Positions 1,981 to 40,790 of a DNA stretch of 64,000 nucleotides are shown in pieces (within the stretch, counting starts at the first letter, position 1; every line of letters begins with the position of its first letter). A model generated the notes under the pieces. It searched no databases and was not told where the DNA came from. It saw only the letters and a program-made list of their open reading frames with translations. Position numbers and translations under genes: made by a program. Origin of the DNA: Dimorphilus gyrociliatus (taxonomy: Eukaryota; Animalia; Annelida); assembly GCA_904063045.1 (NCBI GenBank), contig CAJFCJ010000006.1, positions 2,923,631 through 2,987,630 on the forward strand, written 5' to 3'.

Positions 1981-2970
1981 TTACCTTTGATCAATTTCTT
2001 TTTGGTAGGTACCATGAGTAGAGATCTTAATTAGTAAACCATATAAAACTACTGCATGATGAATATTAGTTGCCCATTCGAGTTCATTGTTGGAAAATCT
2101 AATTTACAGAAGTAATATTCATAATTTTTAATATGAAATGTTCAAAAGTATGATTTTTACCAACAATTTGTCTATTGCAGCTGTAGCTCCAATAGTTTCT
2201 GGCATTTTTTGAAAAGTGTCTGGCTTGACGAGAACTTGAAAACTAGTCTGAACCTTGTAGTGTTTCCAGCTGATAACGCAATCATTTACTTAGTAATAAC
2301 TATAATAATTCAAAAGTGAAAATGTGCGTACTTGTGAGGAGAAGCATAGTATCCAGAATATACTATTGAAGGAGATACAAACACGCGTTTATAATCGAAA
2401 CCTTTAGGTCCGTAATTTTCTCCATAATGCCCAAATAACTCTTTCAACTCTTTACCAGTGTACAAAACATCACCTGGCATACACAATTGACCAGTGCGTA
2501 AAACGTCTCCAACTCTATTTGGTTGTGTGCCATGATAGGCTCGGTAATAGCACTCGAACGAATCTTCTAGAGGAGTATATAATTTTAATCCGAATCTGCA
2601 CCATCCAACAGGAATTGCATAGGTCATTGGAGGCTTTCCTCTTGAATAAGATTCTCTATCTCCTCTTTCTTTGTGGCAAACTCTGCAGTAGCAAATGTTA
2701 AATTGTTCATTCATATAGTTATCTGTCATAATAAAGATTTACTATATTAATAATAAAAATGTAGTAAAAATATTTTTCAACCCACCGTCTAGCTTAAGCT
2801 CTTCCTTCACATATTCTTTCGCCAAGTCTTTTAAAACACAAACTGAAAACAAGGGAAAATGTATATGTAAATAAGCAATAACTTAATGTTATAATAAAAA
2901 TAAAATAACCATTTCCATCAAGAGGATCTCCTTGAAAAAAGGTACCATCACAACAAACATTGCTTGCCAT
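1981..2970 (-). CDS. Paralog 0: stand-alone NEURL4-type ART domain protein (no SPRY, no ARM)
   Basis: Inferred exons: MASNVCCDGTFFQGDPLDGN / CVLKDLAKEYVKEELKLD / CYCRVCH..YAIPVGWCRFGL..RAYHGT..FVSPSIVY / FQVLVKPDTF..ETIG / FSNNELEW..LYGLLIKI..stop at 1981-1983. Introns are GT-AG. Confidence 0.75.
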
Positions 2971-3477
2971 ATTTCCAATTATAGATTCATAAGAAAAGAT
3001 TGATAAAAATCAATAGGGAGACTATTCTGTACTTGATATATATTCTCAAGTCAGTGATGTAAAACTAAACAGCAAGAAAAGAAAAGAAAAGTAGAAAATT
3101 TGTTACATTAACATATTTCTTCTACTTTTATTTTCGTTCATTTCATACTATTTTTTATAACGCAAAATATGTTTCCGTTCTTTTTTTTGTGGTTTTTAAA
3201 TTGTATGACGATCATAGGATCATAAAAGAAATAGTTGTATATTGTTGTATATGGAATATACGAAGTTGAACTAGAGAATACGAAAATCTATCTTCAAAAG
3301 CTTAATATTTCAAAAGTTAGGCTAAATATTTACAAACACATCAATAATTTTGTAATAGTTTTTGTTTTACTTTAAGTCTATTGTGTATACTTTCAGTTTT
3401 TATATACTGTATTCATAATAATAATAGTCAACTACGTATTTAAAGGTGTCTAATATCTTTTTCTCTTGTGAAGTTTA

Positions 3478-6099
3478 TTATTTCTGTCTTAAATCTGCTT
3501 TTATTAGTAGGCCATAGATAATTAATGAATTATCATTTTCAACGAACCATTCTATTTCGGTGTTGGAAAATCTGCAGAGAAATTCAATTGTTTATTGCAT
3601 AACGAACAAGATTTAGGTGAATACATACGATGGATCAAATTGGAGTTGTTTATTGCCGTTTCTACCTTGAGCTGTATAGCTATCGGGTCTTACTAAGACT
3701 TGAAAAGCCAATTTAATGTCATAAGCTCCGTATCTTTTAAGTAAAAATGGAATATTAAACCGACAAATATTTAAAATCTCCAACTGATTAAGTACCTTCT
3801 TGACTGAGATGTGTAACTGCAATATTTAATTGATGGAGAAACAAATCTAGTTGCTGATTCTCGGATTTCTGAATTACGACTTTCAATAACTTCTTTTACA
3901 CTATCGCTGAAAGATATTGGAAGATAGGCTCTATGCCAATCCTCAAAGTCGTACACGGTTGCATGGGTGTCGTGAACGTTGAGCCCTATCCTATACCATC
4001 CAAGAGGCAAAACATATTTTCTTAAAGGCTTTCCCCTATGATAATAGTCATTGTCTTTTCTATAAAGGTGGCAATTATGACAGAAACATTTGCTATGTCT
4101 TTCTGCTTTGTAAGAATCTCCTATAAGTTTAAAAGTTGTAAACAAATTAGTTGCTTCGTTTAGCTGTTAAAATAGACTAACTTATGGATAATTCAGTTTT
4201 AAAATATTTATCACATAAATTTTTTAATTGACAAATTTCTGAGTCTTTTATCCTCTTGATTTCGTTCAATTTTAAGATACAAGTTGAAATTAAATCATCA
4301 AATTCGTTTCCTTTTAATTTTTCCAATTCCATTATGAATCTATCTGCGTTGAAATTCCTCGGTAAGGTGTCTACTTTTCTAATAGTTTTAATAGTCATTG
4401 AGAAACAGACGCTTAAACAATTTAAAAGATGTTCACAGGACGTTAAATCGTTTGGGTCTAAATTTTCCAATTTATTTCCCAACATGTTCATTATACCCAT
4501 ATCAAACAAATGTTGGTAATTCCTTTCATTTCTCAAAGCATACCTTAAAATTTCAAGAATTAACGTCGATTGGAGTTTATCATTGAAATATTTTATCAGT
4601 AAATTCGCACAAGTTTCTATAAAAGGAAAAACAGTTATATAGTTATTTAGCATAGCTATTTTTTTATTTAAAAACAACCATCAAGTTCAAAGGTTTCTCC
4701 ACAAAGAAGAATACTTATCGTTAGAGTAACTAGTTTGATGTTATCAGGTGTGAGATGGCATCTTGTAAAGTTAATATAGTAATCTCTTTTTTCCAAAATT
4801 CTACCTGATATCTCCGATATCTTACAGCCCTGTTTAATTAACTGTAAAGTACACAGCAAAATTCCATTCGGATTTAACTGTTTAACAATTAAAATATTAA
4901 TGAATTAAGATGAATTTTAAAATAATTATATTGTATTGTACTTTAAGTTTTTCGGCCTCCATTACAATGTGTAAAAGATCAATAAATGAATTGTCAAAAG
5001 CCAATTTAGCGAACATAGCATTCTTCTTTGAACAACTCTTGAAAAATTTACACATCATTCTGTAACTTTGTTGAATATCATGATCGTCCATATACAATGT
5101 GAAAAATCTCAACATTTTATTTGCAACCTCAAAAAACTGACTTTTCATAATAATGGTTAGAATAGTTTCGTATAGGATACTATCACAGTAGCATACTCTT
5201 AAAAATTTTAATAGTTTCTTTAAAAAATCTTTAAAAAGAGAGTATTCATTAATTTTTGCTATAAGATCCAAAATTTTAAGAAGAACTTTAGTAAACGTTT
5301 CCAAATCGCTATAATATCCTTCAGATTTAAGAAGATACGGTAGTTTCGCAACGCTAATTTCACAGTTTTTACTGGAGATGCTTACCGTTAGGAACAGATT
5401 TTTATTCTGTTTTGTAAATAATTCAGTTATTCCGGTAAAACATATACCGTAATCTATATCATTTGTTCCGAATGATAGAGTTCCTCTTTTAAAATCGACT
5501 ATCATTTTGAAATAGTCGGGAATAACGAAGCTCGGCGAACAATTCTCCGGGTAGCTATGAATTACTTCATTCTTATAATAAAATTCTTTACTGTTTAAAT
5601 CCCAACCAAATGAATTCTCATTCTGACCGCAAAGTGGAACGAGAGAGCTTTCTCTTTTAGAAACTGAATCGGTTGATAAACCAATTATTGAGAATTTACC
5701 TCTTCTCGTTTCTTTAGGCCAATATATTTGATAAACGTGAATTCCTTTGTATAATCCTTCTGTACACTTAGCTAAATCTGAGGAGGTTTTGGAAATATTT
5801 TTACGAATCGTTATCTTTTCATCGGTTATTGTAAAGTTATCTGAGGAATCGATCTTATCCCATTGAAATACATTTTCTTGTTTGAACCATTGGGGTACAC
5901 AACCTTGTTTAGCTTTAACAGGATTAACTTCATACGCTTTAATACGCTTTTCCCAAGCATCCAATGGAAGTGTAAACTCATCCTGAAAATGATACTGTCC
6001 TTCATAATTATCTCTTTCACAATCAGTACCGGATGCATTTCTTATTAGAGTACTTGTTTTCGATTCTATATCACCTAAATCGCTTAGATTGTTACCCAT
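3478..6099 (-). CDS. Paralog A: MG-SPRY-ARM-ART protein; ART lacks the HGT motif
   Basis: Starts MGNNLS. SPRY motifs FQWD, GIHVYQIYWP, FGWDL, MIVDFKRGTLSF; helical repeats; then CFCHNCH..LPLGWYRIGL..WHRAYLPI..FVSPSIKY..FQVLVRPDSY..FSNTEIEW..YGLLIK. Stop 3478-3480. Confidence 0.85.
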
Positions 6100-6367
6100 A
6101 TCTGTCTGTGATATATCTGCTTTCGTTTTCGATAAAATGGCGTCTGGTGGTTACCGAAATAGAAAATAAAATGTTTCATACGTTGTATTTAAATATTGAA
6201 GCTAATTCATCATTTTTAAATTTTTTGGACAGGGAACCTAGTTTTAAAATTCTACTTTCGTTTTTAAAATAGTAAATAGCAATAACAACAATTGAAAGCT
6301 GATATCATACTGTATTTTGTGTAAAAAATAGTTCTAAATGTTAGTGATTATTTATCGAAAAAGAAAG

Positions 6368-9102
6368 TTAACTTTTTTCAATAGGTTCTATATTAATCAA
6401 AAGTCCGTAGAGAGCATGACAAGCACGTTGCATTGTAAACCATTCAAGTTCGTCGTTGGAAAATCTGTTAAGATGATTATTAAAATAAATATTAATTATA
6501 TTATTTTAATTGATTTTTATACAAAAAACCAACTTCTGATCAATTTGTTTGCTTTGTCCAATTGTTTGTGGTCCAATTTTGTAAGTATTTGGTGCCATTA
6601 GAACTTGAAAACACATTTTGACAACGTATTTATCTTTCCATCTATAGAATATTTTTTAATTAATAGATTACTTTGTTTAGTGTAATAATAGATAAAAGTT
6701 GATAATTACCTTGATCCTGGGGAGTAGTGGGTTGAATAGCGAAGAGATGGAGATACAAATACACATTTTGTATTGAATCCTTCAGGTTTTCTCTCATCAT
6801 TAAAGTGATTTGGCAATTCTGTCAGCCGATGACCACTAGCTGTATAATCACCGGGTAATAACAGAAATCCATGACGTAGAATATCAGGGATAGTCTCAGT
6901 CTTGGTACCGTGATAAGCTCTATGCCATTTTTTTACGGCTTCTGCCTCTTCTGCAAAAGGAGGTAAAACCAAACCAAACCTATACCATCCAATAGGCAAT
7001 GCATAGGTTCGGGATGGCTCTCCACGTGAGTAATAATCTTGATCGTTTCTTTTAGAATGGCAGTTGATGCAAAAACATCTATCGTATTTAGAGTCAAAAT
7101 ATACCGAGCCTATAAAGAAATAGAATGGTTGTCTTCCTATTTTTGAATAATCAAATAAAAGTATATTTACTAAAATTTAAACACTGCATTAATTCTGCAG
7201 TTAAATCTTTCAGAAGGCATTTTTTCTCTACAGCTACTCCTTTCTCAATTTCATCTAATTTGTTTAGGCAGGAATTAATCTGGCATTCAATGCTGCTTGA
7301 ACCGCTTGATAAGTCTTTGAGAGTTTCTCTTAATCGCTTTACGCCTACACTATCTCTGAGAGAACTATTATGAGAATTTTCCCTTTGTAATTCGACAACT
7401 TTCGTTAATAGTTTAATTAGACATTGTAACGCTATAGTAAGACAGTCATTTTTTTCTTTAATTCCATTCAAAATGCCATTAAATTTACCAGTAACCCCTT
7501 GACGTAACAAATACAAAATATTCTGATTGTTGTCCAGTACTGATGCCAATGTATCCAGAGCTTCTTTTGGTAATATGAAAAAGTCATCTCCGACCTTTCC
7601 ATCTAGGGCTGCAGATTCAGCGAAAGAGGCAATGATATCCAGAAAATGTGCTGAATTTAACAAAAAAGCTTTGTTATTATTCTTATATTCTATATATATT
7701 CATATATGCATACAATTAATGGTCCATTTAGATCTCGAATCTTCGTATTTTATATAGCCAAGACTCATAATACATAGTATTGGAATAAATGATTCGACGT
7801 CTACACCTGCACATATATTATCAGAACAATGTTTTTCAAGCAATCCGTCAATTTTCCTTTGAAGAATTTCATCTCTTATTGCCGATATCTTAGAGAGATT
7901 GCATATTAGGATGAGGATAGGGAGTAGAATATCTTTCTTGATCTGTAACCAATTGATTTAAATGATTAGAAAAGCTATTAGTTGTTTGTTTAAGTAATAC
8001 TAACTGATATTGACATATTTGCTTTAATTATGTCTGAAAGTACAGTTTCCAAAGTATCTAAACATCCAGATTCAAATAGTGACGTGGAAAATTTTGCAAA
8101 ATCGTGGGAACATGTTCCCATCAGTTTAGTTATCTCTATAAAATTCGTAATCGCTGCTGGTTTCCTTTTTTGTTTATATGTATATTTCTGATAATGGCAC
8201 ATTATGTTAGCGTCTTTCGCAATCATAGACATATATATCTTATACATCCAAACGTCTTGTTTAGCTTCCTCCAAAATATTATGAAACTTGGCAATGCTTT
8301 CATATATAAGTGAGGAGTCATCTAAGCTTTTGCTACGCATCATCTCTATTAAAGTTCTCCAAACTACAGAATTTTCCGATAAAGCAGACGTACTTCTTGT
8401 TGAAAACAATTGATTAAATGTACTCTTCCCCATGCCTTCGATTTTTGTCATTGATACCTTATCATTGAAATTTGTAAGATTAACTGTAGGATATAGTTTT
8501 ACATTCTTTTTGGAGAAAACTGCATCCAATCCACTACAACAAATTCCAATATCTCCGTGTTCATCTTTAAATGAGAGGATCCCTTTCTGCAAGTCTAGGA
8601 TCATAAAAAAGGTGTCTGATACTGAATAACCAGGATTCCTGTCCTCCGGATACGTATTCAACACCATTCCTCCGTAAAGAGCTTTATTATTTACTATATC
8701 CCAACCTAGTGAGTGCTGATTTAGACCACATAACGGTAGGCATTGAAAATTTTGAATGGGTGCCATCTGAGAAGAAACACCAATAACTGCACACAAACCC
8801 CTCTTTTTCTGAGGCCAATGTATTTTAAATATGTGTAATCCATCAGTATATCCTTCAGCTGCTTTTGCAATATGTGAACTAGGTCTTTCTGCAATTTTAG
8901 ACACTGTCAATCCGTCAGCTTCTATTCTGAGAGATGAAGATGTCTTTTCCTCATCCCATATAGACGCCTGTTTTATCCTAGGGCTTTTGACTGCTTCTGC
9001 AGGCCTTTGAGTGTTTCTCGTATTGGAATTCTTGAGTGCACTCACGAAAATTTTAGCTATATCTTCTTCCAAGTCTGACAAATCGCCTTGAGCATTTCCC
9101 AT
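6368..9102 (-). CDS. Paralog B: MG-SPRY-ARM-ART protein, catalytic motifs intact
   Basis: Starts MGNAQG. SPRY exon 7990-9102, ARM exons, then PIGWYRFGL..WHRAYHGT..FVSPSLRY..FQVL..FSNDELEW..YGLLI. Stop 6368-6370. Confidence 0.85.
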
Positions 9103-9651: not shown

Positions 9652-12303
9652 TTATTTTTCGTTCTTTTCGATTTTAATTAGTAGACTGTGCAGTACAACA
9701 GAACTTCTATTTTCTGTAAACCATTCGAGATCATAGTTTGAATACCTGAATGAATAATTAAAAATCAATTAATTCATTTAATTATAAAGGAGTAGTTTTA
9801 GTTTGCATTTACATTAAATCAATTTGCTTTTTAACACCAATTGTTTCGGGTCCAATATTATAGCAATTAGGCTTAATTAGAACTTGAAATGCTGCTTTAA
9901 CTGTACAACCGTTCCATCTTTTGAAAAATAGGAGGGTTTTTTTTAAATTGTTTCTATTGCTATTCTAATTATTTAGCTTACTGTTTTCCTGGAGAATAGT
10001 AATTTGCATAGCGAAGAGAAGGTGAGACAAATATTCTCTTTGTATTGAAACCTTCTGGTTTATTATCATTGTTGTAATGTCCAGGTAGTTCTTTTATTCT
10101 GTGACCGTCAGCAGTCATCTCTCCTGGTAAAAGTAGTTCCTCCTGGCGCAAAATTGTATAAACCCTATCAACTCTTGTTCCATGAAATGCTCTATGCCAA
10201 GTTTCAGAAGCTCTTTCCGATTTGGCTTGAGAAGGTATTTTAAGAGCAAATCTAAACCATCCAATAGGTAAGGAATGATATCTTGGTGGGATACCATGAG
10301 ATACCCCTTCGGCTTCATTCCTTATCGAATGACAAACTGGACAATAACATTTATCATATTGGTTCAAGAGATACGATTTATCTGTGTAAAGAAACGAGTA
10401 TTTCAGTGAAAATGTTAACTATATATATATATATAGTTTCTTACTGTCAATATTAATATATTCTTTTAAGAAGCGTCTACTTAAATTCTCTAAAATGCAT
10501 TCGCCTTTTATTTTTCCTATTGTAAATTTTTGTATCTTATAAAGACATATTTTTGACGTCATTGAAAGATAATTGAAATCTCTCTCGTCCAACTTCTTTA
10601 ATACATCCACTAAGCCATTAACTTTAACAATTTTTCGATATTGTTGATCTTTACCCTCATGAGTCATAACAATTAACGTAAATAATTTATTCAAGCATTG
10701 CTGTGCTAATTCGAGACAAACGTTGTCATTTGATAATTGAATTAAAGCGTCGTTTAAGATGCCAATTAAATTCCTTTTTAATAGAAAATGACAATTTTCC
10801 GCACAATCCAATATTGCTAGTAAAGTTTCCAACGCTTCTCTGGGAAAAACATACATTGTTGAAAATTTTGCATGTCCTTCTTTTATGGCTTTTATAGTCA
10901 ATTCCACTAAGATTTCTAATAGTTTTTCTACGTATTTGAAGAGAGTAGTATTTTATTAGTCATAAAGTTATGGCCAATCCCTATACAAACCTGGCACTAT
11001 CCAAGCTTGTCGATTATCGCTGTATAAAACGTTACCTAGAGTCATAACGCTAATAAGACAAACTGTCGGTGGATATGCTATCGTATCGCAATAATTCTCC
11101 AAAATTCCATGAATCCTCTTTCGTATTATTTCATCTTTTATTATTGTCACCTTTGACAAATTGTGTAAAAGGCCTATTGAATTTACTAGAATCTCGCTTT
11201 TTACCTAGAATTTTTGAATAAAGAGAGTAGTAAGAAATTATATCTATATTTTCATTATTACTTACGTCTTGCGCTATTGATAGTTTAGGCATAATTTGAA
11301 AAGTATCTATAATAGTATCTAAGCATTTTTGATTAACGAGTGCAATGGGAAAAAGAGCATTTCCCCAAGTATAATAATACATAAGTCGAGATACTGCAAT
11401 GAAGCATTGAACACCGACACTATCTCTTATTTGTGTTAGGGAGAATATTTGAAAAAGATTTAAAGCTCTGGTATCATCAAGTTTTGTCATCATTTTTAAA
11501 TATGTTTTATACATCCATAGATCATCTCTAACCATAAAATTTAGTTCCAAAAATTCTTGTATAATTTGAAGTATGACATTGACCTTATCCGAACTTTTAT
11601 GTATCATCATTGAATTTAACATACGCCATTTAACTGACATCTCTAGTAGCATTCCAATCCTTCTTTTGGAGGGATCATGAGATGAATTATGAATTTCTAC
11701 CACGGTAACTTCGCTACCAGCTGATGTAAGATTAATAACGGGATATAGTTTAATCCCCTGTTCAGCAAATATACTATTTAATTCACAATAACAAAAGCCA
11801 AATTCCTCGTCATCCGTTCTAAACGCTAATATGCCTTTATCAAGGTCTAAAATCATATAAAAATTTTCAGGCACTGCGTAGTTGGGATTTCGATCTTTGG
11901 GATAATTCTTAATTAAATTCCCATTAAAAAATGACTGATTATTAACGATATCCCAACCAAGAAGAACTTCGTTTGAATCGAAAATCTGAACAATTTGTGA
12001 ACGACAAACTGGAACTTGATCTGTAGATACACCTATTATAGCAACCTCGCCTCTTTTTTTCTTAGGCCAATTCACTTTAAAGATGTGTATGCCTTCAGTA
12101 TATCCAGATGTACTCCTAGCTATATCTGCAGTATCCGTAGATAAACATTTTTTTACTGTTAAGCCAAGATTACATATTTCCAAATTGGGAGAAGACTCGT
12201 AATTATCCCATTTAAAAGCTGTCTTTCCAGCAAAAGTTCGAATAATCTCTTTTGTAGATTGTTCAATTGTAGATTTATTATCGAAATCCGAATTGCTTTC
12301 CAT
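9652..12303 (-). CDS. Paralog C: SPRY-ARM-ART protein (no Gly2)
   Basis: Starts MESNSD. SPRY FKWD..GIHIFKVNWP..GWDIV..LDLDKGILAF..LYPVI; ART CYCPVCH..WHRAFHGT..FVSPSLRY..YSNYDLEW..LLIKI. Stop 9652-9654. Confidence 0.85.
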
Positions 12304-13653: not shown

Positions 13654-13657
<4 letters not shown>

Positions 13658-13685
<28 letters not shown>

Positions 13686-13713: not shown

Positions 13714-14223
13714 AAATTTTATGCCTGAACGAATATTCTAAAAGAGAAAATAGCCCCTCCCTTTTTTTCTGTCCATCACCCTTGATTAAATTACCAACTC
13801 TTATTTTTTAAATAAAAAGTCCTCTAGTCCTCCAGTTAATCTAAATATCATAAATCCGATATGAGATACATATATAGGATATATAGAGTTAATTTTAAAG
13901 ATGATATCTTCAACAGAGACTACTCAAGATGGCTCTTTTTTTTCACACTTAGTAAAAAAAATGAAAAAAAAGAATAACCTTGAAAAAAACAAGGTCTTGT
14001 ATTCTTCTCTTTCTTATTCTGCTTCTAAAGAGCAAAAATCATAATAAACTAGCAATAATAGATTGTATACAGTACACCCATATTTTTTTATTATTAAGTT
14101 ATCTATAATTTTTCTTCTAGAATATTTATTTTATAAAGAATACGAAAAGAATGGAAAATAAATATGATAACATATATAATTTTTAAATTAAAGACTCTAT
14201 TGTTAGATAGGGGGGGGAAAAAA

Positions 14224-14848
14224 ATGGAAAAATCGAATTTTTTTGATTATTTATCAATTGATTCGAGAGTTATTACATTTGAAGAAGATAAATACGGAAA
14301 TTATAAATCGAATATAACATTAAAAAATAACTTGAAGAGTAATAGAGTTAGATTTTTATTAAAGACGAATAAATCAAAAATATTTAATATTAAACCTACA
14401 AATACAAATATATTGGATTGCGATGAAAACATTAATCTAAAAATATCTTGTAAAACTGCTAGTATTGATGAAATAGAAAATAGTTGTTTTCAAATATTGG
14501 CAAATATCGTTAATGATGAAGGCCCTGATAAAGATAGTAATCAAGTAGTAGAAGCAAGATTACCTTGTAGATTACAAAGTCGTGAGCTTATCCTCCCTGA
14601 AAAGGGAAAGCAAAATGTGGAAAAAATGTAAAGTAGTCCTTTAAATTTCTAGATCGATATCTATTTATTCTATTATCTATAGGTTAATTAATATAACAAT
14701 ACTTATGGTTGGTTTTCTAATCGGTATTATTTTTGCCACATTCTTTTTGAGGTCATATTATCAAAGATTGGATAAAACTGGTGGAATAACGGATTCTTTA
14801 ACAAATTCTCTTTATTGGATGTTTTTTACAAATGATAAATACGATTAG
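14224..14848 (+). CDS. MSP-domain (VAP/MOSPD-like) tail-anchored membrane protein
   Basis: ITLKNN..VRFLLKTNKSKIFNIKP..INLKISC resembles the MSP fold. Intron 14628-14682. Exon 2 gives hydrophobic ITILMVGFLIGIIFATFFL and stop TAG 14846-14848. Confidence 0.65.
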
Positions 14849-14971
14849 AAATTGTTGGAAAAGCATTAAAGAACACAAAATGTCCAATTAGCATATTTTC
14901 GGTTTTTAATATAGAAATATTTATATAAAAACTTTTTTTTTTAAAAAAAAAAATATGAAATAAAACATAGC

Positions 14972-16306
14972 TTAATAAATTTTAAGTAAATATATCTTGT
15001 TCGATAGTTGAGTGTCTTTCCCCCTGAAGGCTATATATTGTTAAGCTTCCTTGAAATATTGACAATAGTAATAGAGTAATTCCAATAATTAATAGTCGGG
15101 AAAAAAATTTGCCTGTCATTTCAAGAATTGTTATAGAAATTTCTCTTTCCAAAAAGAAGAAACATCCCTGTAGAGAGAAAAAGAAAAAAAAGAAGAGTGT
15201 TTATCATTTTTACCTAAAAATTTGTTTATTTAAGTATAAAATACTGTTTGATAAATAGCTGTATTCGAAAATGGAGAGGTTACAGAAGAATTTGAATGTT
15301 TCGATGGTTTCTGGCTAAAGCAACTTTGATTTTTAGGTTTTGTTGCGTAAATACTACACGATTCTGGTATTTTTCCATTCCAATCTTGATAAGTATTAAT
15401 TCCACAACAGTTGCACTGAAAAATTAAAGGAGGTAATAGAAAATTTAAATTAATAGAATAAAATATTACATCAATCTGCAAAGCATCCCAAAATCCTCTA
15501 TCGTAATGATTTTCATTTGCATTATTCTGAACGCGTTTTAATGAATTTATCATAACTCTTTCAGCAGATTTCCTTATCTATTTATTAATTAAAAGAATAA
15601 CTATAAAACTTAGAAAAAATGATATTTTTACCTCTCTAAACAAGTGTTCTGTATAACTATTAGCGCATCTCATTCTCGAGTAGCCACAGAAGATACAGAA
15701 GACAGATCCAAATAGAATAACAATTGGCTATAAATGTATACAGATAAGAAAAATAGAAAAAACTAGTTAAAATATTATATAATCATTTTACCCAAAAATT
15801 AGTTTTTCTCTTATTTAAAGCAATGCAAAATATACAAAATCCGCAAGAAATAACAATTGAACTCGATAGAATTATTATAATTTCGTTTGTATTTATTTTT
15901 GAGAAACTTTCATCTTGAACCAAATTCAACCAACAAAATTGTTTTCCAACTTGAAATTTGTTTATTCTAGTTTATAATATTGTTTATATTGTTTGTTGAT
16001 TTTATATTTTATTTTTTTCAACTTTTTATGAACTTACCTGCAATTTTTTTGAGATGAAGGATCTATCGTTTGAGTAAATACTCCTATTATTATTAAAATA
16101 CTCCCTCCGCACATCATTATTAAGATGCTAGATAAAATGAATAATCCAAATCTTACTTTTAACCAATTTATTTGGAGCGAATGTAATGAAATTAAACTTG
16201 AAAATATATTTGAATTTGCTGAAATTGTCCTCTGTAATAAAGAATCGTTATTATTTAATACTCTTTCACAACAGCAACTCATGCTGGCAGTTTCTTCTTC
16301 TTCCAT
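14972..16306 (-). CDS. Divergent tetraspanin
   Basis: Multi-exon gene with hydrophobic segments and the large-loop signature WDALQID-CNCCGINTYQDW..IPESC..GCF (CCG motif). Last TM segment LLIIGITLLLLSIF. Stop 14972-14974. Exon 2 was not fully resolved. Confidence 0.75.
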
Positions 16307-16850: not shown

Positions 16851-19543
16851 TTATTGAACTTTCACCAGGAAACCATATAAGAAGATTGCGCCACAATGAT
16901 AAGTCATCCACTCTAGCTCGTCATTAGGTAACCTTAATAATATTAAAAAATAAAAAAGCAGTATTTTTTTTAATATGACAATAAAATATTTTCTAGAAAC
17001 TACCTTGGATCGATAGCCGTAGTACCTAGATTCATAGTCTCTGGTCCTACGGTGTAAACATCAGGCTTTACTAGAACTTGGAAAGCTGTCTTAAATGTCT
17101 TATCTTTAAAGCTAAATAATGACAATATATCTTTTATTTATCTTGATATTTGTATTTTACTAATGGATTTACCTGACTTGGTCGCAATAAAGTTCCGAAT
17201 AAAATATCGAGGGGCTCAGAAACGTTTGATTTACATTAAATCCTTCTGGCTTATTATCCTCTGTAAAATGCCATTCTGGTGGTCTAATTTTTTTACCATC
17301 TAGGGTAGTATCACCAGGCTTTAAAAAATTACCATGCTGCAGAATGGGAACAATATTATTATAAGATGTTCCATGATACGCAATTTGCCATTTTTTTAAA
17401 GCATCAATTGACTTGTCTGCATGTCTTGAGGGAAGTTTCAAACCAAATTTAAACCAACCAATAGGAACAGGATACATCCTACTAGGTTCACCTTGCGACT
17501 TATAGTCACTTCCTCCCCGAGCTAAATGACAATTTCGGCAATGGCATCGATTAAATCTCGAATCAATGTAGGTTTTAACTAAATAAAGAAAATGACTCTC
17601 TGTTAACTATTCTATTAATTAATTATTTACGTTCATTCACCGTCAATCTTTAAATAATCTCTTACAAAGCTAGTAACAATTTTCTCTATTTCGCATTTCT
17701 TCTTCTTTGCGGCTCCATTGGTAATTTCATGTATTCTTGCTTCACAAATTTTTGCAACATTTACGATCGATGGTTGATACTTAGACGAAAACTTCTTCAA
17801 AAATTCTTGTAATTCGCGATTTCTAATGTTGGAGTATACTTCATCAGTTAATAAACTCTTGTTATCCTTTGAAACACTAATCACGGTTTGTAAACATCTA
17901 CTTAAACAATGCAAAGCCAACTCTATGTGATGAGCATGTTCCTGCACTTTATCTACTTTTTGAAATATCTTTAATAGGCTTTCTATAAGACATCCTTTAA
18001 GCAACGTTAAAGAATTATTGTCACTTGTTAACGTTCCGGACAATAGGCTGAAAGCTACTCTAGGATAAATTATAATAAAACATTGATCGGTGTCATCTAC
18101 TGCTGACTCTTTGTCGTATTTTGAAAGTTTGCATCCTACATATTTTGATGAATCCACAACTAGTTTAACAACTAAGCGAAGTGCTGAATCTGTGTTGTTA
18201 TTAATAAACTCTCTGCATTGATTCTGTTGCAAGAAGAAGAAAATTTACCTTTCAAATCAAATGTAGCCTTTTCTTTTTCACTTAAAATATTCATCAGGCA
18301 AATTAAATTCAATAATAAACAAGAATCTTTATCCTCTTTTTTATAAATCTCCATTAAAGATGATTTAAGATCTTCTCTATTCATGACATCTTGAATAGCA
18401 GATACTGAAGATATATTCATTATTAAACCAAAGACTTTCCAACGACAGGAACGTAAATCCGTCTATAAAAGTGTAAAGTTATTTAATTAGTTTATTAACT
18501 TTTCTCAAAAAATTGGCTTTGCTTACAAATTGATTTACACGAAGAATGTTGTCCAGAATTCCTACGATAATATCTAGACAACCTCGGTTAACGATGGTTT
18601 TCGAAAACTTCCGACTTTTTGATGTAAATCTCAAGAGAAATGATAAAATACTACTAAGTGGATTAGAAAGATTAGTTCTTTTACTCCTATATTGCAAGTA
18701 TTTCAAGTAGTTAATTAAGGATTCTGTCTCGTCGTAATCAATGATAAGATGTGTATACATTGAAGTAGTTAGAGTATCTGCAACTCTTGGAATGTTTGAA
18801 AACAACTTTAACTTTTCATTAATATAGTTTGTGGAAGAGAGAGATCTCACTTTCATTTTCTCCGCTAGCTCTTTCCATAGTGATGAATAGGTAGAAATAT
18901 CACCGATGTCGTCATTCGGTGAATTGTTACTATAAATCAGGGCCATGCTTACTTCACTGCCTTTTGATGAAATATTAACGGTTGGATAGAGGGGAACATT
19001 TCGAAAAATCCTTTCAAGACAAGTACAACACGAGCCATATTCAACAGAATCCGACCTAAAGCTTAAACACCCCGAGCGCATATCTAAAATCATATAAAAA
19101 AAGTCTGGAGCCTCAAAATCATCCGATATATCAGCAGGATAAGGCATTTTCCGGCCAGAGCCCCAAACGGCATTGTTTTTATTTAAGTCCCAACCAAATG
19201 AATTATTGTTTGATCCACAGAGCTGTTGTTGTTCTTCTCGATCAAGTTGGGCATCTTTAGTCGAAAAGCCAACTATACAAATTTTTCCCCTCTTTTTTAC
19301 TGGACTGTTTACTTCAAAAATATGGATACCTGACGTAAAACCTTGGTTGCCTTTTGCTAAATTAGACTTATCCGAGTAATTTTCTTTATATATTGTCAAA
19401 TTATTATTTTTCAGTAATAAATCATTGGAACTTTCAGATGCATTCCATTTAAATCGTGTTCTTTTCTTGACAAATTCTAAAAAGTTCTTTGTAGCCTCTT
19501 CTCCCTCATCAATCGATATCTTTGCAGGTTGAGCTATTGCCAT
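16851..19543 (-). CDS. Paralog D: SPRY-ARM-ART protein (no Gly2)
   Basis: Starts MAIAQ (ATG 19543). SPRY FKWN..GIHIFEVNSP..FGWDL..LYPTV; ART PIGWFKFGL..WQIAYHGT..FLSPSIFY..LPNDELEW..YGFLVKV. Stop 16851-16853. Confidence 0.85.
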
Positions 19544-21073
19544 TTGTAAATGATTTTCGTTCTTTAACACACCTTATTTCAATACAAAAAGTATTCAATA
19601 TATCTAATGAACTTGTAAAGAATACGATCAGTAAATGACAAAATGATCAAATTGAAAAAATTACAAATAAGCAAAGGTGAAGTGGCTACTTTCGATATCA
19701 AAAGTAATCAGTGAATAAGTAACCAGTCTAATAGTGTAAGGTAAATATCGAATGACCTATTTAAAAGTACTTGATACGAAAAAAAAATGATGACCAAAGT
19801 AGAAAAAAATCTCTAAGTCATCTACATTTATTGCGTGATATATTTACATTTTCATTTCTCTTCTCTTCCCTCCAGTATACTTAGCTTAATTAGTCATATT
19901 TTATATAACCTACTTATGGTTATAATATACAGTATACAGATGACTTACATTTTAATTTCTATAAGAGTTAAAAGATCTTAATCTACTTAAAATTATCACG
20001 TAAAAATTCTATTTATTATTTTGCATTGAATTAGATTTTCTAGTAAAGAATTTGCGAGAAAAAAAACACCTTTTAACTCTAAAAAGACCTTTTAATTCGT
20101 TATTCTGAAATACTACAAATATGTATAACATTTTCTACGAAATTTATAATTACTTTCCTCTCTCTTTGATGATTAAAAGAAATAGAAAAAAAATAATAAA
20201 AAAAAGTGCTAAAATAAAATACTTTGACCTAAATGTAACAGAAATTTTTTGTACTTCTTTCGTTAGACGACACTATTAAGGAGGAGTTTTTACAAATAGA
20301 ATGTTTAATTATTTACTTAGAAGTGAAAACATTCTTTTTTAAAACAATAATAATAATAACAAAATATTTCAATCCTTTTTTTGTTTACGTTGTTTGCTTT
20401 AAAGAGACAAAAAATGCATCTTTATTTGTTAAACAGCGTTAGTGTAAAATATTTTTTATTAGTTTTTTTGTTTTTTTAAAAAAACAAAAAGATTCTTTTT
20501 TTCGAATGACTAAACAACTATGAAAAAACATTCTCGGTTTATTTTCATAAAATGCTTTGTAAACAAAAAATTATCATTTGTATATATATATTAGTATATA
20601 TATAGAAAATATATATAGAAAATGTGATGAAAGATGAAAGGGGTGAGAATATCAGCCTTGGTGTTTTATTCATTATTTTTAATGTCTAAAAGGTTAATAT
20701 CTTATATTTAATCTGCACTCTTAACTAAATCATACTATTTTTTATTTTTATTCGAGGATGAATTTAAAGAAAAAAAGACGTTATTTTAATTAAGGTACAG
20801 CGATCTTTCTAAATATAACGCTATTATATCTTTATTAAGTACAATGACTTTAGCGAATCCTTTATATCACAAAGAATGGCAGAAATAGAACATTGAAATT
20901 TTTTTTTACTTAAATTTATTAATTAATTCGATCTCTGCACTTCTACTATGCATGCAAAAAACACACTTTTTTTCTTTTTGACATTGTAATTTGACCTCGA
21001 GGATTTTCACTCGTAGGGTATAAATTATAGACCATCATAAGCATATTACTCATTTGAATCAGAAGTTTGAAAG

Positions 21074-22298
21074 ATGCAACATACGGCTATATACGAGGAT
21101 ATTTCTTTCACTCTACAGGAAATTCTTGTATCTTTGGATACACTTGTTGACTGTCCAAAGAATGGTAGTTGGATGATTAAGAATGGGCTTGTTGAAGTAT
21201 TAATTGGTATTTTAAGAACGCTGTCAACTAGCGAAACAATTTTCCATTTAACAATGGTCATCTTAAATAAACTGCTACATCAGGATCAAAATAAAGACGA
21301 TGACCAGTATTTTCTCGAAATCGATTCCGAAAAGTTATTAGATACTTTGGAGATACTTAAGGAAAAAGAAAATCTCTCTTTTTTAACTTCCGCCGAAATT
21401 TGCTTAAATAAGATACTTTTGTTAAGAAATGAAAATATCTTTTTGGATTGTCTCCTTGAAGAGAGATGTTATAGATTTTTAAGAGAAGTTTTACATATTG
21501 ATGGTAACTTTTCATTTATTTCTTTTTTTTTATTGTATGTCATTGTCACATGATTTTGTTTTTTTTTTATAGAAGATGCTTACCTGGATCCTAGATACAA
21601 TAAATGCTATTGTACTCGTTGCCATGCACAAAGACAATTAGACGATTACGATGAAAGGGGTAATCCTCCTAGAACTTATGCCGTACCTACTGGATGGTAT
21701 AGATTTGCTTTAAAAACTCCACCCTTTGCTGCAGGTGAATGTGCTTTTGATAACTGGCATAGAGCATATCACGGTACAAGACCAGAGTACATTCCAGAAA
21801 TATTACGTCACGGCTGCCTCTTGATGCCTGGAGATATAACGTCCAGAGGTGATGTGCTGAAAGAAATTGAAGAAAACCGACACGACGAAAATCAACCCGA
21901 AAACTTTAATTCAAAACAAATCTTTGTATCTCCTACAATTAAATACTCGGATTTCTACGCTAACGGAACAAAGTAAAATCATTAAGTTTAATTAATATTA
22001 ATTTATTCACATATTATAATTTACGCAACGAATATTCAACAGATGGAATAATTTTACTGTAAAAGTTGCTTTTCAAGTTCTTATCAAGCCAAACTCTTAC
22101 AGAACGGGCAGAGAAACTATCGGTCTAGAAGATCAAATTGATCCAAAGTAATTACTTGATAAATATTCTAATTAATTAGTTAATTAATTAATTACATAAA
22201 TTATGATATTTTGTAGATTTTCAAATAATGAAGTTGAATGGTTTACAAATCGTCGGGCATCTATTATTTTATATGGACTTTTAATTAAAATGGATTAA
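21074..22298 (+). CDS. Paralog E: 5'-truncated ARM-ART protein (SPRY exon absent; possibly a young pseudogene)
   Basis: ARM exon from ATG 21074 splices in frame to DAYLDPRYNKCYCTRCH..PTGWYRFAL..WHRAYHGT..FVSPTIKY, then FQVLIKP..ETIG, then FSNNEVEW..YGLLIKMD stop 22296-22298. No SPRY seen upstream. Confidence 0.7.
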
Positions 22299-23021: not shown

Positions 23022-25681
23022 ATGGGTCTTTCTACCAGTAAAAAGAAGAAGTTGCATCATACAAATACAAATGATGATTTACCTGAAGTGACCGAAAGTA
23101 AAGAGGATAATAATTCTAAATTATCAACAAGTCAGACCTTTTTCAAGTGGGATATTAATAGCTGCTCAAAAAATTTGGTTATAAGTGATGATTTTTCTAC
23201 AATCAGTAAACCATTTAAAACAGGAACAATCGACTCTGTCCGAAGTAAATTTGGATATAATTCAGGTCGTCACGTCTACAGAGTAAATTGGCCAATTGAT
23301 CGACGAGGAGAAGATATTGCTGTAATAGGATTCTCCACCAAACACCTACCTCTTCAATCTGTTTGTGGAAGTAGTGAAAAATCATTCGGCTTGAATTTAA
23401 TAGACAATTCGATAATATTTAATAATGCTAAAACGAATACAAACGCCGATGAGGAAGTACCCGATACCTTTATTGTCATTTTAGATCTAATCGATGATTG
23501 GTGGATTATCAAGATGGATAATAAATATATTAAAATTTCATTAAAAGAATTGAAAAATGTTATTGAAAAGGAGAATAATAAATTATATTTAACAACTAGT
23601 ATGACGAAAGATGGTGGAAGAGTAAATGTTAACATTGACTGGAGAAATCCATCTATTCTATTAGAAGATGACTCACCGCACATACTAGATTCAATATCAA
23701 TGAAATACGTCTTTGATGTTTCAATTCAAGAATCTTGGCTAACATCAAAAAGTATTTTAAAGCAACTGATCTTAAACGATGGAGATAAGATTAAATCTAT
23801 AATTATCCAAAGTATTAATCTCTTTAAGCTTTATCCAAATATGCTTGAATCATCAATTGCAATCTATAGTGCCGACGATAGTATTAAAATAATATTAAGG
23901 TATTACGAATTATTGTCAAGGAATTTGGAAGATGAAAAAGTACATGCATGCTTCAAATGGATGACAGTCTTCCTATTTTTTCTTACAAATACAAATTCAA
24001 CTAATAGCTTTTTAGCGGAAGAGAATGGAATATTGAAAATAATTGGAAAAGTTCTTAAAATGTTTCAGAATAAAAAAAATCCAGTAAGTTGAGTCAAATT
24101 TGCAGTTTATTGTTTAAATAAATGATCTTTATTTCTTCTTACGTAGAAGCCATTTTTATTAATCAAGCTATTATTAAATTTATCCAAACCTATACAAATG
24201 AGAGAAAAGATAAGGCAAAGCAGAGTTTATGATATAATTTCGTGGTTTAGCGATAACGACGACGTCGAATCCTATAAAATGTATGCAACAATGATAAAAG
24301 CAAGAGTAATGAATAGTACCGAAAGAAGTCACTGGAATATAGATGGTATAATATATTCTAATACATCATGAATATTCAAAATGCTTAATTTACGTTACAG
24401 AAACAATTTTACAAAGTTTAACTATATCAATAAAACTTCGAGACGAGAATGGTAATATCGACTTTAAAGAGATGACTCTCAATTTATACGAAGTTTTAGA
24501 TTGTATCAGTCTGATTTGCGAAAATTCGGATAATGGAAAATACTTTCTTCGTAACGGGGTCACGTACGAACTAATTGATATTATAAGTATTCAATCAACT
24601 CATACTTTAACAGCTGAAAAAGCTGTTCATTGCTTAAATCAGCTATTTAATCAAATAAAGAAAAGATTAGAAAATGGTAATCTATCCGATATAGATGATA
24701 TTGCATTTCTGTTCAAATCCGATAGATTAAATATGATTCTTCATAACTTACTTGGAAAAAGCAGCGATGTTGACCTACATAAACAAATAAAAACGTGTTT
24801 GATAGAAATTCAAGATATCGCAAAAATTTGCTCAAATCACAATTGCTTTTATAAGAATTTATGCAGAAAATTCATAATCAATAACTTGAAAATAAACGGT
24901 CAGTTTCTATATTCAAAACAAACAGCTAGTAATGAGTTAACTATTATAATTGTTTCAATATTTCTAGATGCTTTCTTAGAGCCTGCCTATGACATGTGCT
25001 ACTGTAAATTCTGCTTTACATTAAGAGGTGATAAGGAATACTACGCTCGAGGATATCCAGAATCTACATATGCGTTACCTATAGGATGGTATAGAATTGG
25101 ATTGAAGTTACCACCTCGGGCAAAAGTTGAAAATGCTTTTGAGAAATGGCATAGAGCATTTCATGGAACCAGAGTTGAGAATATACTTAAAATATTACAG
25201 CACGGTGATCTGTTAATGCCCGGAGATATTACCGCCGAAGGGCAACAGTTGAAAGAATTAGATGGACATTTTAATCTTGATTATAAACCTGAAGGATTCG
25301 ATACACGTCAAGTTTTTGTTTCTCCAACCATTCGTTATGCTGGTCTTAACGTTTATTCATATAAGCAAAAGTAAGTATAATTGAAAGATTAAATGTTTTA
25401 AATTAACAACAATATTTATTAATAAGATGGAAAGACTTCAATGTAAAAGTAGCATTTCAAGTATTAATTAAACCAGGTACGTATAAAATTGGTAAAGAAA
25501 CAATTGGAACAAGCGAAAGAATCGATCAAAGGTAAATAGAATTCACTTTTAATAATCGTTTAAATCTAATAACAATCTTCTTAGAATATCTAACGATGAA
25601 ATTGAATGGTCAACAAAAAGGAGAGGAGTAATAATACCATACGGACTTTTAATTAAAGTTACAAAAGAGAATTTATCATAA
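23022..25681 (+). CDS. Paralog F: MG-SPRY-ARM-ART protein, catalytic motifs intact
   Basis: Starts MGLSTSKKKK. SPRY FKWD..GRHVYRVNWP; ART CYCKFCF..PIGWYRIGL..WHRAFHGT..FVSPTIRY..ISNDEIEW..YGLLIKV. Stop 25679-25681. Confidence 0.85.
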
Positions 25682-26229
25682 AAAGAACAGTTATTATTCT
25701 TTTAATATATAATTGTTTTTATAAATAGATAGTAAAAGCTGGTTTTTTTATATTTGATTAACGTTTTACCTGATTTATCTTCGTTTAATTGTTATTAAAT
25801 GAATAAAAAATGCTTTAATTATAATTTACGATATTTGAAATAATCCATGATTAAAGACCTTTAGCGGATACATTTATGTATTCCATAGTAACTTGACTTT
25901 CATTAGGCATGCAGCCGGATGCAAAGTTAACTTTTTGATGAATTTTTATTCCAAGATTTTCTAAGCACACTCTATGACATTTATCATTGGCGATAAAAGA
26001 TAAATATCATCCTTTAGTCAAATCTAGAATCATGTAAAAATCCTCATTGACTAATCCAATTAATTACTAATCGTTGAATAACTCTTTAAATATCTAAAAT
26101 ATTCAATTTTTATCAATACATATGATTACTTGTTCACTGAAATGTATATAAGCCTATTTATTTCAAAATTATAACAATAACCATAAAAAATATAGCGTTC
26201 CTTTTGCGTTACTTCTTATTCTTTTTTTT

Positions 26230-37993: not shown

Positions 37994-38081
37994 AATAATA
38001 TTTTTTTACTTTTTGTTTTATTATGCAAAAGTCATTAATAAACCATTTATTATCTAATTATGTCATAAAAATATTGTATAT

Positions 38082-40790
38082 TCAATTTTCAAGAGTTTCT
38101 TGTTTGTCTATCAGTTTAATCAATAACCCGCGTATAACTGCCATTCCTTTTAAATTTATCGACCATTCGATTTCATCATTGGAAAATCTAAAATTTACAA
38201 AATATTGAAATAAAAGACAACGGAGAAAATGAATTAAAACTCACTTTGAATCGAATGGGGAATTTGATCCAACAACTTCTTTTCCTAGTTCATAAGTACC
38301 AGGACAGACTAACAAGTCAAAAGCAACTTTAACTATCTTGTTATTCCATCTATGTATAATAATAAATATTACATAAAGAAAGATTAATTTTAATTTAATA
38401 AGTACACGTATGATTCGGCAAAAGCGTCTAAACCGGCGTATCTTAATGAAGGAGATATAAACACTCTTTCTTTCGCAGTCTCTCCACTCCTATCAAATGA
38501 TCGTTTCTTAGAATTGTCTAAATTTGATGGGGATGACACAATATCTCCTTGCCGTAGAATTTTCGAAATATTACCGACTCTTGTTCCATGATAAGCTCTA
38601 TGATATTTCTTTAAAATATCTTCATTTAATATTCGAGAGTGAGTCTTCAATCCTAATAAATACCATCCAATTGGAACAGAATAAGCCCTTGGTGGAATAC
38701 CTTGATAACAATATTCCTTAAAATTTCTTGTTGAATGACAAAAACGACAATGGCACTCTGTGAATTCTTTATTAATGTGTTCACCTATGAATAAAAGTTA
38801 CCTTTTGAACTATATACTATATAGCTATATTTGACAGATATGTTATTATTTTGAGATAAATACTTTACCACTTATTAACAATACATCATCAATAAATTTC
38901 TTACAGTCATTCTCTAATAGACAAGCTTCAGAAGCAAATTGATAACTATCAATTGACCATATTTTAATTAAACAAATTTCAGCTGATTCAGCTAGACCAT
39001 TTATTTCATTTTTAGATAAATCTTGTAATTTTTCCCTTATTTTTCCTTGTTGCAGTTTACCCTTTTCACTTTCTTGTAGACTTTTATCCGTAATAATTAC
39101 AGATAGAATTGTATTTAAACAAGTTATTGTAAATTTTACATTAATTTCTCCAGTTAGCTTATGACAAAGAATTTCAAGTAAAAAGTCTATCAGTCCATTA
39201 TGAATCATATAAATACAATTCTCAATACATTCTAACGTATATGATAAACATTCTAGAATTTCTTGTAAGTAAAAAACAATCCCTTCAAAAATTGTTTTTG
39301 ATTTGATGGTTGATTTAATTTGCTCTAATAATAAATCAAGAATACTCTCTGTAAATATTAATATTTAATTTATATTAGATAAACGAGAAATTTAAAGTAT
39401 AATGCCGATTTTTACCTTCAATCTTCCAAAATTTCTTATCTGGTAATATACGGCCTAAGGCCATCACTTTTAGAAAGCTCACACCTAAATCATACCTTTG
39501 AAAATCTGGATAATCCTCTAAATATACTCGAAGATCTCTATCACGAATTTCGTCAGCCAACTTTGAAACTTTAGAGAAATTATATAATATTCTCAAAATG
39601 AAAGTAAACACTGATTTCTTTGCCTGGTTTTTGTTTTTGATTAGAATTATATAATATAGATATAAATGAAAGGTTGAGAAAGAAACATTTAGTTTTACCT
39701 CTATATCTTCGACAGCTCTTTCGTTATTTCCTTTTTCAAGAACATTATGAATTAGGTCCAAACATCCCTGTCTTGCAATTGCGGATGGAAACATTGAATT
39801 ATTCTCACAATTATTTTGTATAAAACTACTCATAACAATACAATTTGCTTTGCTCTTCTCCATATGAAAATTATCCCAAGTGTACTTAAAATAGGCCATT
39901 AAAGTTTCACCTCCATCGAATTTGAGTAACATATTTAAGAAAACTGCATGAGCACCTTTCACTCTTTTTATTAACCGACAACAGGATTCCAATTGAAGTA
40001 TCATAAGCTGAATGCTATCTGCATACTTTGTTCGTCCCGTTTTCATCATGATATTGACTTTTGTCCACTTCCTCGATAAGTCAGAAAATGACAAAATAGG
40101 AACCATGTACGAAATAACATCATTTAAAATATTCATCCATGAAGTATTCATCTTAAACATTGTTACTTGACTTCCAATCGATTTCATTGCTATTGTTGGA
40201 TAAAGTTTTATTCCCCGATTGCCAAAAGCAGTATCCAAATCCCTACAGCACACTCCCAAGTGCCTATTTTCTACTTTAAACAGTAGTACTCCATTATAAA
40301 GGTCTAATATCATAACAAAATTATCTGGCACTTTATAGTTTGAATCAATTTCCAATGGATATTTGCTCATTATTGCATTATTAAAAATTGATTTATTGCT
40401 AATAAGATCCCAGCCCATAACTACTTCAAAACCGCCAAAAACTTCTCTTGGTAAATTACCTGATACTTTGCAGGAGATTCCCATAACCGCCGAATCTTGA
40501 CCTCTCAATCTAACTGACCAATTTACTGAATAGACGTGAATACCGGATATCTGTCCGTCGGTACTTCTAATAATATCCATAGTATTCGTATCGGTAACTT
40601 TAGTAACTGACGATCCATCCTTAGTTACTGTAATATTTTTGGAGCTTCGTTCGTCCCAAAATGCAGGAATTGATGCGGCTGAAATGTTTTCATCAACAAA
40701 TTTCCTAATGCTACTCTGACTTTGAGTTTTTTGAATTGGAACAGAGATTTTATGAACGGTTTGCTGAGGTACGCCCAAATTGCAGCCCAT
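38082..40790 (-). CDS. Paralog K: MGC-SPRY-ARM-ART protein
   Basis: Starts MGCNLG. SPRY WDER..GIHVYSVNWS..MGWDL..LYPTI; ART CHCRFCH..PIGWYLLGL..YHRAYHGT..FISPSLRY..FSNDEIEW..GLLIKL. Stop 38082-38084. Confidence 0.85.

Follow-up and report, generated by a model that had tools for sequence, protein, structure and literature searches.

The window analysed here, a stretch of 64,000 nucleotides from contig CAJFCJ010000006.1 of the annelid Dimorphilus gyrociliatus, is AT-rich eukaryotic DNA with a GC content of 26-34%. Between positions 1984 and 40790 it contains a tandem array of genes whose full-length products combine a SPRY domain, a helical region predicted to resemble ARM repeats, and a C-terminal domain predicted to be an ADP-ribosyltransferase (ART). 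By means of six-frame motif scans, lists of open reading frames (ORFs), and spliced gene models, 11 paralogs (A to K) and one dead SPRY relic were identified. SPRY is found in eight of the 11 genes, the helical region in ten, and the ART in nine. An earlier note on this DNA, made from the sequence alone, had arrived at the same counts for ~39 kb, and the forms it distinguished, i.e., intact, His-less (B and I), ART-only (A), ART-less (H), and ARM-only (K), are as it described them. The members are given below in window coordinates; MG denotes a Met-Gly start, and the residues of the ART catalytic triad are written as, e.g., H-Y-Q.

1984..2882, minus strand: gene A (isoforms DgyrCDS4902-4904), the relic tail of ARM exon 3 followed by an intact H-Y-Q ART, lacking SPRY.
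3481..6099, minus strand: gene B (second half of DgyrCDS4905), MG-start SPRY-ARM-ART, His-less (AYL), with a deletion of ~19 residues after the His position; expressed and spliced.
6371..9102, minus strand: gene C (first half of DgyrCDS4905), MG-start SPRY-ARM-ART with intact H-Y-Q; expressed and spliced; the copy modelled with AlphaFold2 (AF2).
9655..12303, minus strand: gene D, SPRY-ARM-ART, intact; the slowest evolving of the copies; Met-Glu start here, MG in a relative.
16854..19543, minus strand: gene E (DgyrCDS4910), SPRY-ARM-ART, intact; Pfam SPRY match with E=1e-8.
21074..22295, plus strand: gene F (DgyrCDS4911), ARM exon 3 and an intact ART, lacking SPRY.
23022..25678, plus strand: gene G, MG-start SPRY-ARM-ART, intact; intron 3 in frame inside a long ORF.
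~25875..26051, minus strand: the dead twelfth copy, a SPRY exon relic with an in-frame stop, just downstream of gene H; tblastn E=2.8e-5 to the SPRY of gene D.
26233..28164/28280, minus strand: gene H, SPRY-ARM, lacking the ART; candidate upstream MGC-start mini-exon from 28280.
28795..31461, minus strand: gene I, MG-start SPRY-ARM-ART, His-less (AYYK); intron between exons 2 and 3 lost.
36298..37537, minus strand: gene K, the ARM-like helical region alone, lacking SPRY and ART.
38085..40790, minus strand: gene J (DgyrCDS4915), MGC-start SPRY-ARM-ART with an H-Y-D triad.

A full-length member is made up of six exons, in which exon 1 encodes the SPRY domain and the first helices, exon 2 a small helical part, exon 3 a further helical part that ends with '...ID', and exons 4-6 the ART. 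In the spliced models the introns have phases 0, 1, 1, 2, and 2 at homologous positions in all copies. These shared positions and phases indicate an origin by duplication of genomic DNA, as had been proposed in the earlier note, and they are confirmed by RNA for genes B and C, where ten of the ten predicted GT..AG introns were recovered in spliced contigs of one transcriptome run. All 11 models have open frames (206-814 residues) and canonical splice sites, and for B, C, E, F, and J they are identical to the annotated proteins. The annotation DgyrCDS4905 (1588 residues; 3481-9102, minus strand) is a fusion of two separate genes, C and then B, which the RNA contigs compared do not join. DgyrCDS4902-4904 are not extra ART-only copies but isoforms of gene A. 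One stop-free, in-frame intron each is present in gene G (24898-24968, plus strand) and gene J (39623-39699, minus strand), so that raw ORFs exaggerate the exon lengths; the longest exon of the family matches DgyrCDS4915 at 95% identity across 97% of its length, the gap being a small in-frame intron. In gene I, the stretch concerned by the loss of the intron between exons 2 and 3 is 29526-30230 (minus strand). A tblastn search of positions 40800-64000 and of the intergenic gaps gave no more family copies except the relic at 25.9 kb. Upstream of gene F, a short open stretch at 20790-20885 (plus strand) resembles the end of exon 2 (...MTL.N.LY...W..); this stretch, for which tblastn was not significant, may be what is left of the missing 5' part of gene F.

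The AF2 model of the ART, built from an alignment of 69 sequences, has a predicted local distance difference test score (pLDDT) of 96.2 and a predicted template modelling score (pTM) of 0.91, and adopts an ART fold. When it was compared by Foldseek to the Swiss-Prot models, the C-terminal 210 residues of mouse, frog, and human NEURL4 ranked at the top (E ~1e-18, TM-score 0.80, 31-32% identity), followed among the reviewed UniProt models by PARP16, 3, 12, 10, and 4. Among solved structures the catalytic domains of PARP4, PARP2, PARP16, and PARP10 ranked first, and the structural look-alikes in the Atlas were mostly PARP clusters. Judged from the predicted fold, the C-terminal domain is a NEURL4-type ART, which agrees with the earlier note, and the motif string reported there for this domain recurs in the family alignment: CxCxxC(H), GW, AYHG(T), SPS..Y, FQ(V/L), P..Y, E.EW, and GLL are near-invariant across the family. 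The domain opens with the CxCxxC(H) knuckle, the three Cys of which are near-invariant. At the catalytic site, conservation is likewise high among the 69 sequences (His 65/69, Gly 66/69, Tyr 69/69, Gln 64/69), with a Glu-Trp pair that is also near-invariant. The worm triads read H-Y-Q in A, C, D, E, F, and G and H-Y-D in J, and the His is lost in B, which reads AYL and carries the ~19-residue deletion, and in I, which reads AYYK. The triad class of NEURL4 has been quoted as H-Y-[E/D/Q], and ADP-ribosylation activity has been reported for NEURL4 (PMC8932523); the H-Y-Q of the family fits this class.

The SPRY domain could be assigned to a subtype. A profile made from worm and relative regions matched, among the PDB sequences, Gustavus at 9e-49 and SPSB1/4/2 at 1e-46 to 1e-41, followed by SPSB3 at 1e-11 and all remaining SPRY classes at 1e-5 or weaker. 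Pfam SPRY was above threshold in seven of 11 aligned SPRY regions, and SPSB2, Gustavus, and SPSB1 ranked first in Foldseek when the full-length gene C model was used as the query. In sequence as well as in fold, the worm SPRY is therefore of the SPSB/Gustavus type. No match to the SOCS box was returned when the exon-1 products and the full-length protein were scanned with Pfam, and SPRY is followed instead by the predicted ARM-like solenoid; an SPSB/Gustavus-type SPRY lacking a SOCS box is what the earlier note had described. The residues that form the (D/E)(I/L)NNN-binding pocket of SPSB1 are Arg77, Thr111, Tyr129, Trp217, and Gly218 (PMC2923778). In all eight worm SPRYs the Arg77 position is occupied by Lys, Thr111 varies, Tyr129 is kept in I only, and Trp217 and Gly218 are lost throughout, whereas the SPRY of Lingula and hemichordate relatives retains the Arg, Ser, Tyr, and Gly of the pocket. 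Since the canonical SPSB pocket is not conserved, the ligand of the worm SPRY is not expected to be the (D/E)(I/L)NNN motif.

Between SPRY and ART, the full-length AF2 model of gene C (pLDDT 85, pTM 0.70) places ~22 helices at residues 226-600, preceded by a beta-sandwich at 50-220 and followed by the ART at 603-800. The helical region is all-alpha and contains ARM-like helix triplets. In a Pfam scan of ten relatives, matches were obtained to Arm (1e-10, 1e-6) and to ARM_ARMC5/ARM_PUB; through the family alignment these matches map to residues 349-582 of gene C, and the Arm repeat itself to 484-525. The Pfam ARM signal of the worm proteins themselves is confined to a weak ARM_PUB match (0.004), and a Foldseek search of the full-length model against the PDB was dominated by SPRY matches and gave no direct fold match for the helical region. 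Based on the modelled helices and the aligned Arm repeats of relatives, the region is probably ARM-like, as the earlier note had it, and is modelled as an alpha-solenoid of ~370 residues.

A Met-Gly start is found in B, C, G, I, and J, with a candidate for H. It recurs in five of the five orthologues examined in a relative for which genomic contigs from runs SRR23372215-229 were used, and most of the examined relatives from Lingula, Ptychodera, Glandiceps, and amphioxus begin with Met-Gly-Asn or Met-Gly-Cys. Gene D starts with Met-Glu (12298-12303, minus strand) versus Met-Gly in its orthologue (L004:514), and may thus have lost a predicted myristoylation signal through a change in one codon.

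To place the array among other proteins, a profile of the first ART exon was searched against 1.84 billion representative proteins, which gave 961 matching clusters at E<=1e-3 and 477 at E<=1e-10, including proteins named NEURL4. When exon 1 of gene J and the ART region of DgyrCDS4915 were used in word-indexed searches, nothing came back beyond the protein itself and one partial orthologue; such searches miss the paralogs because these are too diverged to have words in common. The architectures of the relatives were derived from local profiles, Pfam, and name look-ups. Lingula anatina has SPRY+NHR+ARM+ART and 2xNHR+ART proteins, Ptychodera flava has SPRY+NHR+Arm+ART and NHR+Arm+ART, Branchiostoma has Mib-SH3 repeats+ARM+ART, and proteins of Glandiceps talaboti and Saccoglossus kowalevskii are among the nearest non-worm proteins. 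A sea anemone protein of 1016 residues (A0A6P8J9W9) can be aligned with the worm model from end to end (E 3e-42), and residues 1111-1562 of human NEURL4, i.e., the last NHR, the helical region, and the ART, align with worm residues 27-798. In the family alignment the NHR of the relatives is an insertion exactly between the SPRY and the helical region of the worm, and Pfam found no Neuralized (NHR) match in the worm proteins. Other ART-bearing architectures include ZU5+ART and a 'PARP14-like' protein. NEURL4-type ARTs also occur in Amoebozoa and Foraminifera, e.g., in Pelomyxa schiedti (P0019) and Bolivina argentea (P0040), and two tandem ART copies are present in P0007, P0019, and P0069.

The SPRY/NHR-ARM-ART architecture thus occurs among publicly available proteins from at least four other phyla and is not unique to the worm. 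The suggestion in the earlier note that the array represents an undescribed architecture and a new system is only partly right, as Lingula, hemichordates, amphioxus, and the sea anemone have the same design. These relatives carry the automatic NCBI name "neuralized-like protein 4", and a literature search, which did not reach Aravind 2015 or de Souza and Aravind 2012, found no paper describing the architecture. The NEURL4-type ART clade is credited to de Souza and Aravind 2012. What is new here is the NHR-less, tandemly expanded form with conserved pseudoenzymes; the domains and the NEURL4-type ART family were already known.

A maximum likelihood tree of ART domains groups the nine worm ARTs in a single clade (SH-aLRT 99). 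The ARM-ART proteins of Lingula, hemichordates, and amphioxus adjoin this clade, and canonical NEURL4 (crinoid, spiders) is separate. The expansion is consequently specific to this lineage, as the earlier note had anticipated. The worm clade also holds P0118, a protein of 355 residues from metagenomic (Logan/ENA/JGI) contigs, which sits on a very long branch inside it and whose placement is possibly due to long-branch attraction. All worm copies go back to a single ancestor with the SPRY-NHR-ARM-ART architecture, which is still present in brachiopods, hemichordates, and cnidarians, and the NHR was lost in the worm lineage.

The expansion is lineage-specific but old. Identity between the paralogs is 41% in the ART, 33% in SPRY, and 19-21% in the helical region, and at 19-41% amino-acid identity the ratio of nonsynonymous to synonymous substitution rates (dN/dS) was infeasible among them. 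The array was compared with that of the relative, one contig of which (L004) carries the orthologues of D, C, B, and A, arranged and oriented as in the window, while another (L001) carries a K-like gene, opposite-strand genes (961-5164), and then the orthologue of I, again as in the window. An orthologue of J is present as well, and the orthologues of A, B, C, D, I, and J and the K-like gene are all open. The array order thus predates the split from the relative. One of the opposite-strand genes between the K-like gene and the I gene of the relative bears a weak PAN_1 mark. Synonymous sites are saturated between the species (proportion of synonymous differences, pS, 0.6-0.85), so that dN/dS per domain, proposed in the earlier note, is a bound only, and the proportion of nonsynonymous differences (pN) is given against pS instead. 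Values of pN range from 0.08 to 0.13 for D and from 0.21 to 0.50 for B, C, and I, and in every domain, SPRY included, they stay below pS; the copies compared are under purifying selection, and no gene-wide positive selection is seen in pN/pS of the orthologue pairs compared. Evolutionary rates differ about five-fold between the copies; in every orthologue pair, SPRY and ART are the best conserved parts and the helical region has diverged furthest. The dead ARTs take part in this pattern: between the species, identity in the ART versus the helical region is 66% versus 41% for I, and 45% versus 25% for B. The B orthologue has AYL and the same deletion, and the I orthologue reads GFYK. The His was therefore lost in B and I before the split from the relative, and since the His-less state is common to both species, these two copies are retained pseudoenzymes and not products of recent decay. 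The birth-and-death evolution put forward in the earlier note is supported by the relic, the domain losses, and the dead sites, but the rapid turnover that this term implies is not, given the order kept in the relative and a pN well below pS.

Several known systems resemble the array in part. NEURL4 has a homologous C-terminal ART (~200 residues), the same order of beta-sandwich, helical region, and ART (NEURL4 1111-1562), and the same H-Y-[E/D/Q] class. It differs in having six NHR repeats, of which the worm has none, in lacking the SPSB-type SPRY and the MG start, in its length of ~1560 residues versus ~790, and in being a single gene as opposed to 11 tandem copies, and canonical NEURL4 forms a separate ART clade. 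The nearest relatives are 'short NEURL4-like' proteins of Lingula, Ptychodera, Glandiceps, Saccoglossus, and Branchiostoma, together with A0A6P8J9W9, which are known as database predictions. They resemble the worm proteins in the MG start, SPRY and/or NHR, Arm or ARM-like repeats, and the ART subclade, but contain an NHR between SPRY and ARM, an NHR alone, or Mib-SH3 repeats, none of which occur in the worm, and unlike the worm SPRY theirs keeps the pocket residues described above. SPSB1/2/4 and Gustavus, the SPRY-SOCS box adaptors of Cullin-5, have the same SPRY subtype and likely the same logic of recruiting a target to a modifier, with the difference that the worm proteins lack the SOCS box, have an ART in place of a ubiquitin ligase, and do not conserve the (D/E)(I/L)NNN pocket residues. 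PARP16, PARP3, PARP4, and PARP10 agree with the worm domain in the ART fold and in the His-Gly and Tyr elements of the NAD+ site, but at 10-17% identity, a TM-score of ~0.4, and sub-threshold Pfam matches to the PARP/ARTD class they are distant; in addition, the worm ART is preceded by a CxCxxC knuckle that they lack, and Gln stands where they have the catalytic Glu. Lastly, NLR, TRIM-B30.2, and fish NLR-B30.2 families also form local arrays with truncated or degenerate members and with SPRY as a possible recognition module, whereas the worm array has no NACHT, RING, or TIR, has kept its order over a long divergence, and is under purifying selection in the genes compared.

Taken together, the array is probably best viewed as an old, lineage-specific tandem expansion of the 'short NEURL4-like' family, encoding an MG/SPRY/ARM/ART machine that modifies recruited targets. 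In such a machine, the Met-Gly start would allow putative N-myristoylation and hence association with a membrane; SPRY would pick a protein target, as the SPRY of the SPSB E3-ligase adaptors does; and the remodelled pocket, which differs per paralog, could give each paralog a different target. The ARM solenoid may serve as a scaffold or a second binding surface, and the ART of the six or seven intact copies would mono-ADP-ribosylate the protein that SPRY has picked. Members without the His (B, I), the ART (H, K), or SPRY (A, F) could then act in the same pathways as non-catalytic partners, competitors, or free catalytic modules.

Several points weigh against this view. An ART profile gave zero matches to PDB sequences, even at E 10, and the Pfam PARP model (PF00644) reached only 12.8-15.4 bits against a cut-off of 26.7 bits, matching around AYHGT only, so that the assignment of the ART fold rests on predicted structure. 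Wyzewski et al. give human NEURL4 as H-L-E with activity 'not determined' (PMC7955679), and the Gln that takes the place of Glu at the third triad position could mean that activity is weak, of another kind, or absent. Myristoylation, and with it the membrane anchoring named in the earlier note, is a prediction from a sequence pattern, the N-terminal Met-Gly start, and D and E have no Gly2 in this genome. More generally, the enzymatic activity, localisation, and binding of the subfamily are all predicted, and that SPRY and ART act on one and the same protein is assumed.

It is possible, albeit doubtful, that the modification of recruited targets amounts to membrane-tethered surveillance, in which diverse SPRYs watch different host or pathogen proteins, intact members ADP-ribosylate what is caught, and B, I, H, K, A, and F are decoys, inhibitors, or free effectors. 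If this is true, the array would be a counterpart, based on ADP-ribosylation, of the NLR sensor families or of the TRIM/SPSB ubiquitin ligases, and a small, tractable genome could make it possible to test what the little-understood NEURL4-type ART clade does. The reading put forward in the earlier note, an innate-immune cluster of sensors, effectors, and decoys, in which SPRY senses a pathogen, the ART is an antiviral or antibacterial effector, dead and truncated copies are decoys, and turnover follows NLR/TRIM-like birth-and-death, is considered unlikely. SPRY/B30.2 domains and PARPs act in the immunity of other animals. Such a cluster would display what is seen here, namely members in tandem of which some have lost domains, others are catalytically dead, and one is a relic, together with SPRY pocket residues that vary between paralogs and five-fold rate differences, with some members evolving fast. 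In addition, the few expanded gene families of the worm are mostly local duplicates implicated in immunity (PMC7854359), although the part of the supplements of this genome paper that was covered does not mention the present family. However, the order and content of the array are kept across a divergence at which dS is saturated, unlike in fast birth-and-death; pN is below pS in every domain, the presumed sensor SPRY included, with no gene-wide positive selection; the fastest part is the helical region and not the presumed sensor; and, within the sampling available, several phyla have the ancestral architecture in low copy number.

NEURL4 in its HERC2 or centrosomal adaptor role is the model for another explanation, in which the worm proteins are non-enzymatic adaptors or scaffolds whose SPRY and ARM bridge partners, and whose ART-like domain binds NAD+, ADP-ribose, or protein in all copies. 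This is judged quite improbable. It would account for a triad of H-Y-Q and not H-Y-E, for H and K lacking any ART, and for the conservation of the ART in the two His-less copies, which implies a function that does not need the His; moreover, NEURL4 is described as an adaptor with HERC2 (PMC4565672). Against it, the His, Gly, and Tyr of the NAD+ site are present in 65-69 of 69 members across very wide taxa, as a working site would show, and catalytic activity has been reported for NEURL4 itself (PMC8932523). Finally, a decaying array, in which a single gene is functional and most copies are its pseudogenes or artefacts of annotation, is barely credible and is essentially excluded for the seven genes compared with the relative, since the one true relic with a stop, the truncated A, F, H, and K, and the fused annotation of C and B stand against 11 of 11 models that are open (206-814 residues) with canonical splice sites, transcription and correct splicing of B and C, and orthologues of A, B, C, D, I, and J plus the K-like gene that remain open despite saturated dS, with pN well below pS.

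Viewed as an expanded 'short NEURL4-like' family, the array offers access to a clade that is large (961 clusters, from amoebae and foraminifera to humans) and almost unstudied, with activity reported for human NEURL4 only. One 39-kb locus provides a natural series of full-length, SPRY-less, ART-less, and ARM-only members and two catalytically dead ones, which are conserved between species where compared, at least two of the genes being expressed. This series could serve as a structure-function panel for what SPRY recruits, for the activity of an H-Y-Q ART, and for the role of conserved pseudo-ARTs. It also brings to light a subfamily with a conserved myristoylation-type start in several invertebrate phyla that is hidden under the misleading name 'neuralized-like protein 4'.

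Three other genes break up the array, namely an MSP (major sperm protein) domain gene, a tetraspanin gene, and a four-exon gene without an assignment, and the array is flanked by an RRM gene. The MSP domain gene (plus strand) and the tetraspanin gene (minus strand) lie between D and E at 14164-16306. Four consecutive ORFs of 143-252 residues, with no Pfam match, occupy 33289-35925 on the plus strand, opposite to the flanking K and I. At the start of the window, positions 162-1445 (plus strand, in the frame of position 200) contain at least nine tandem copies of a 123-nt unit encoding a Cys-rich repeat of 41 residues (...CSCCKC..C.CKDCKCCPGKNTC.CKDC.C). This frame has no Pfam match and is open over the 416 codons checked, and all three frames listed for the region are open because the repeat is very regular.

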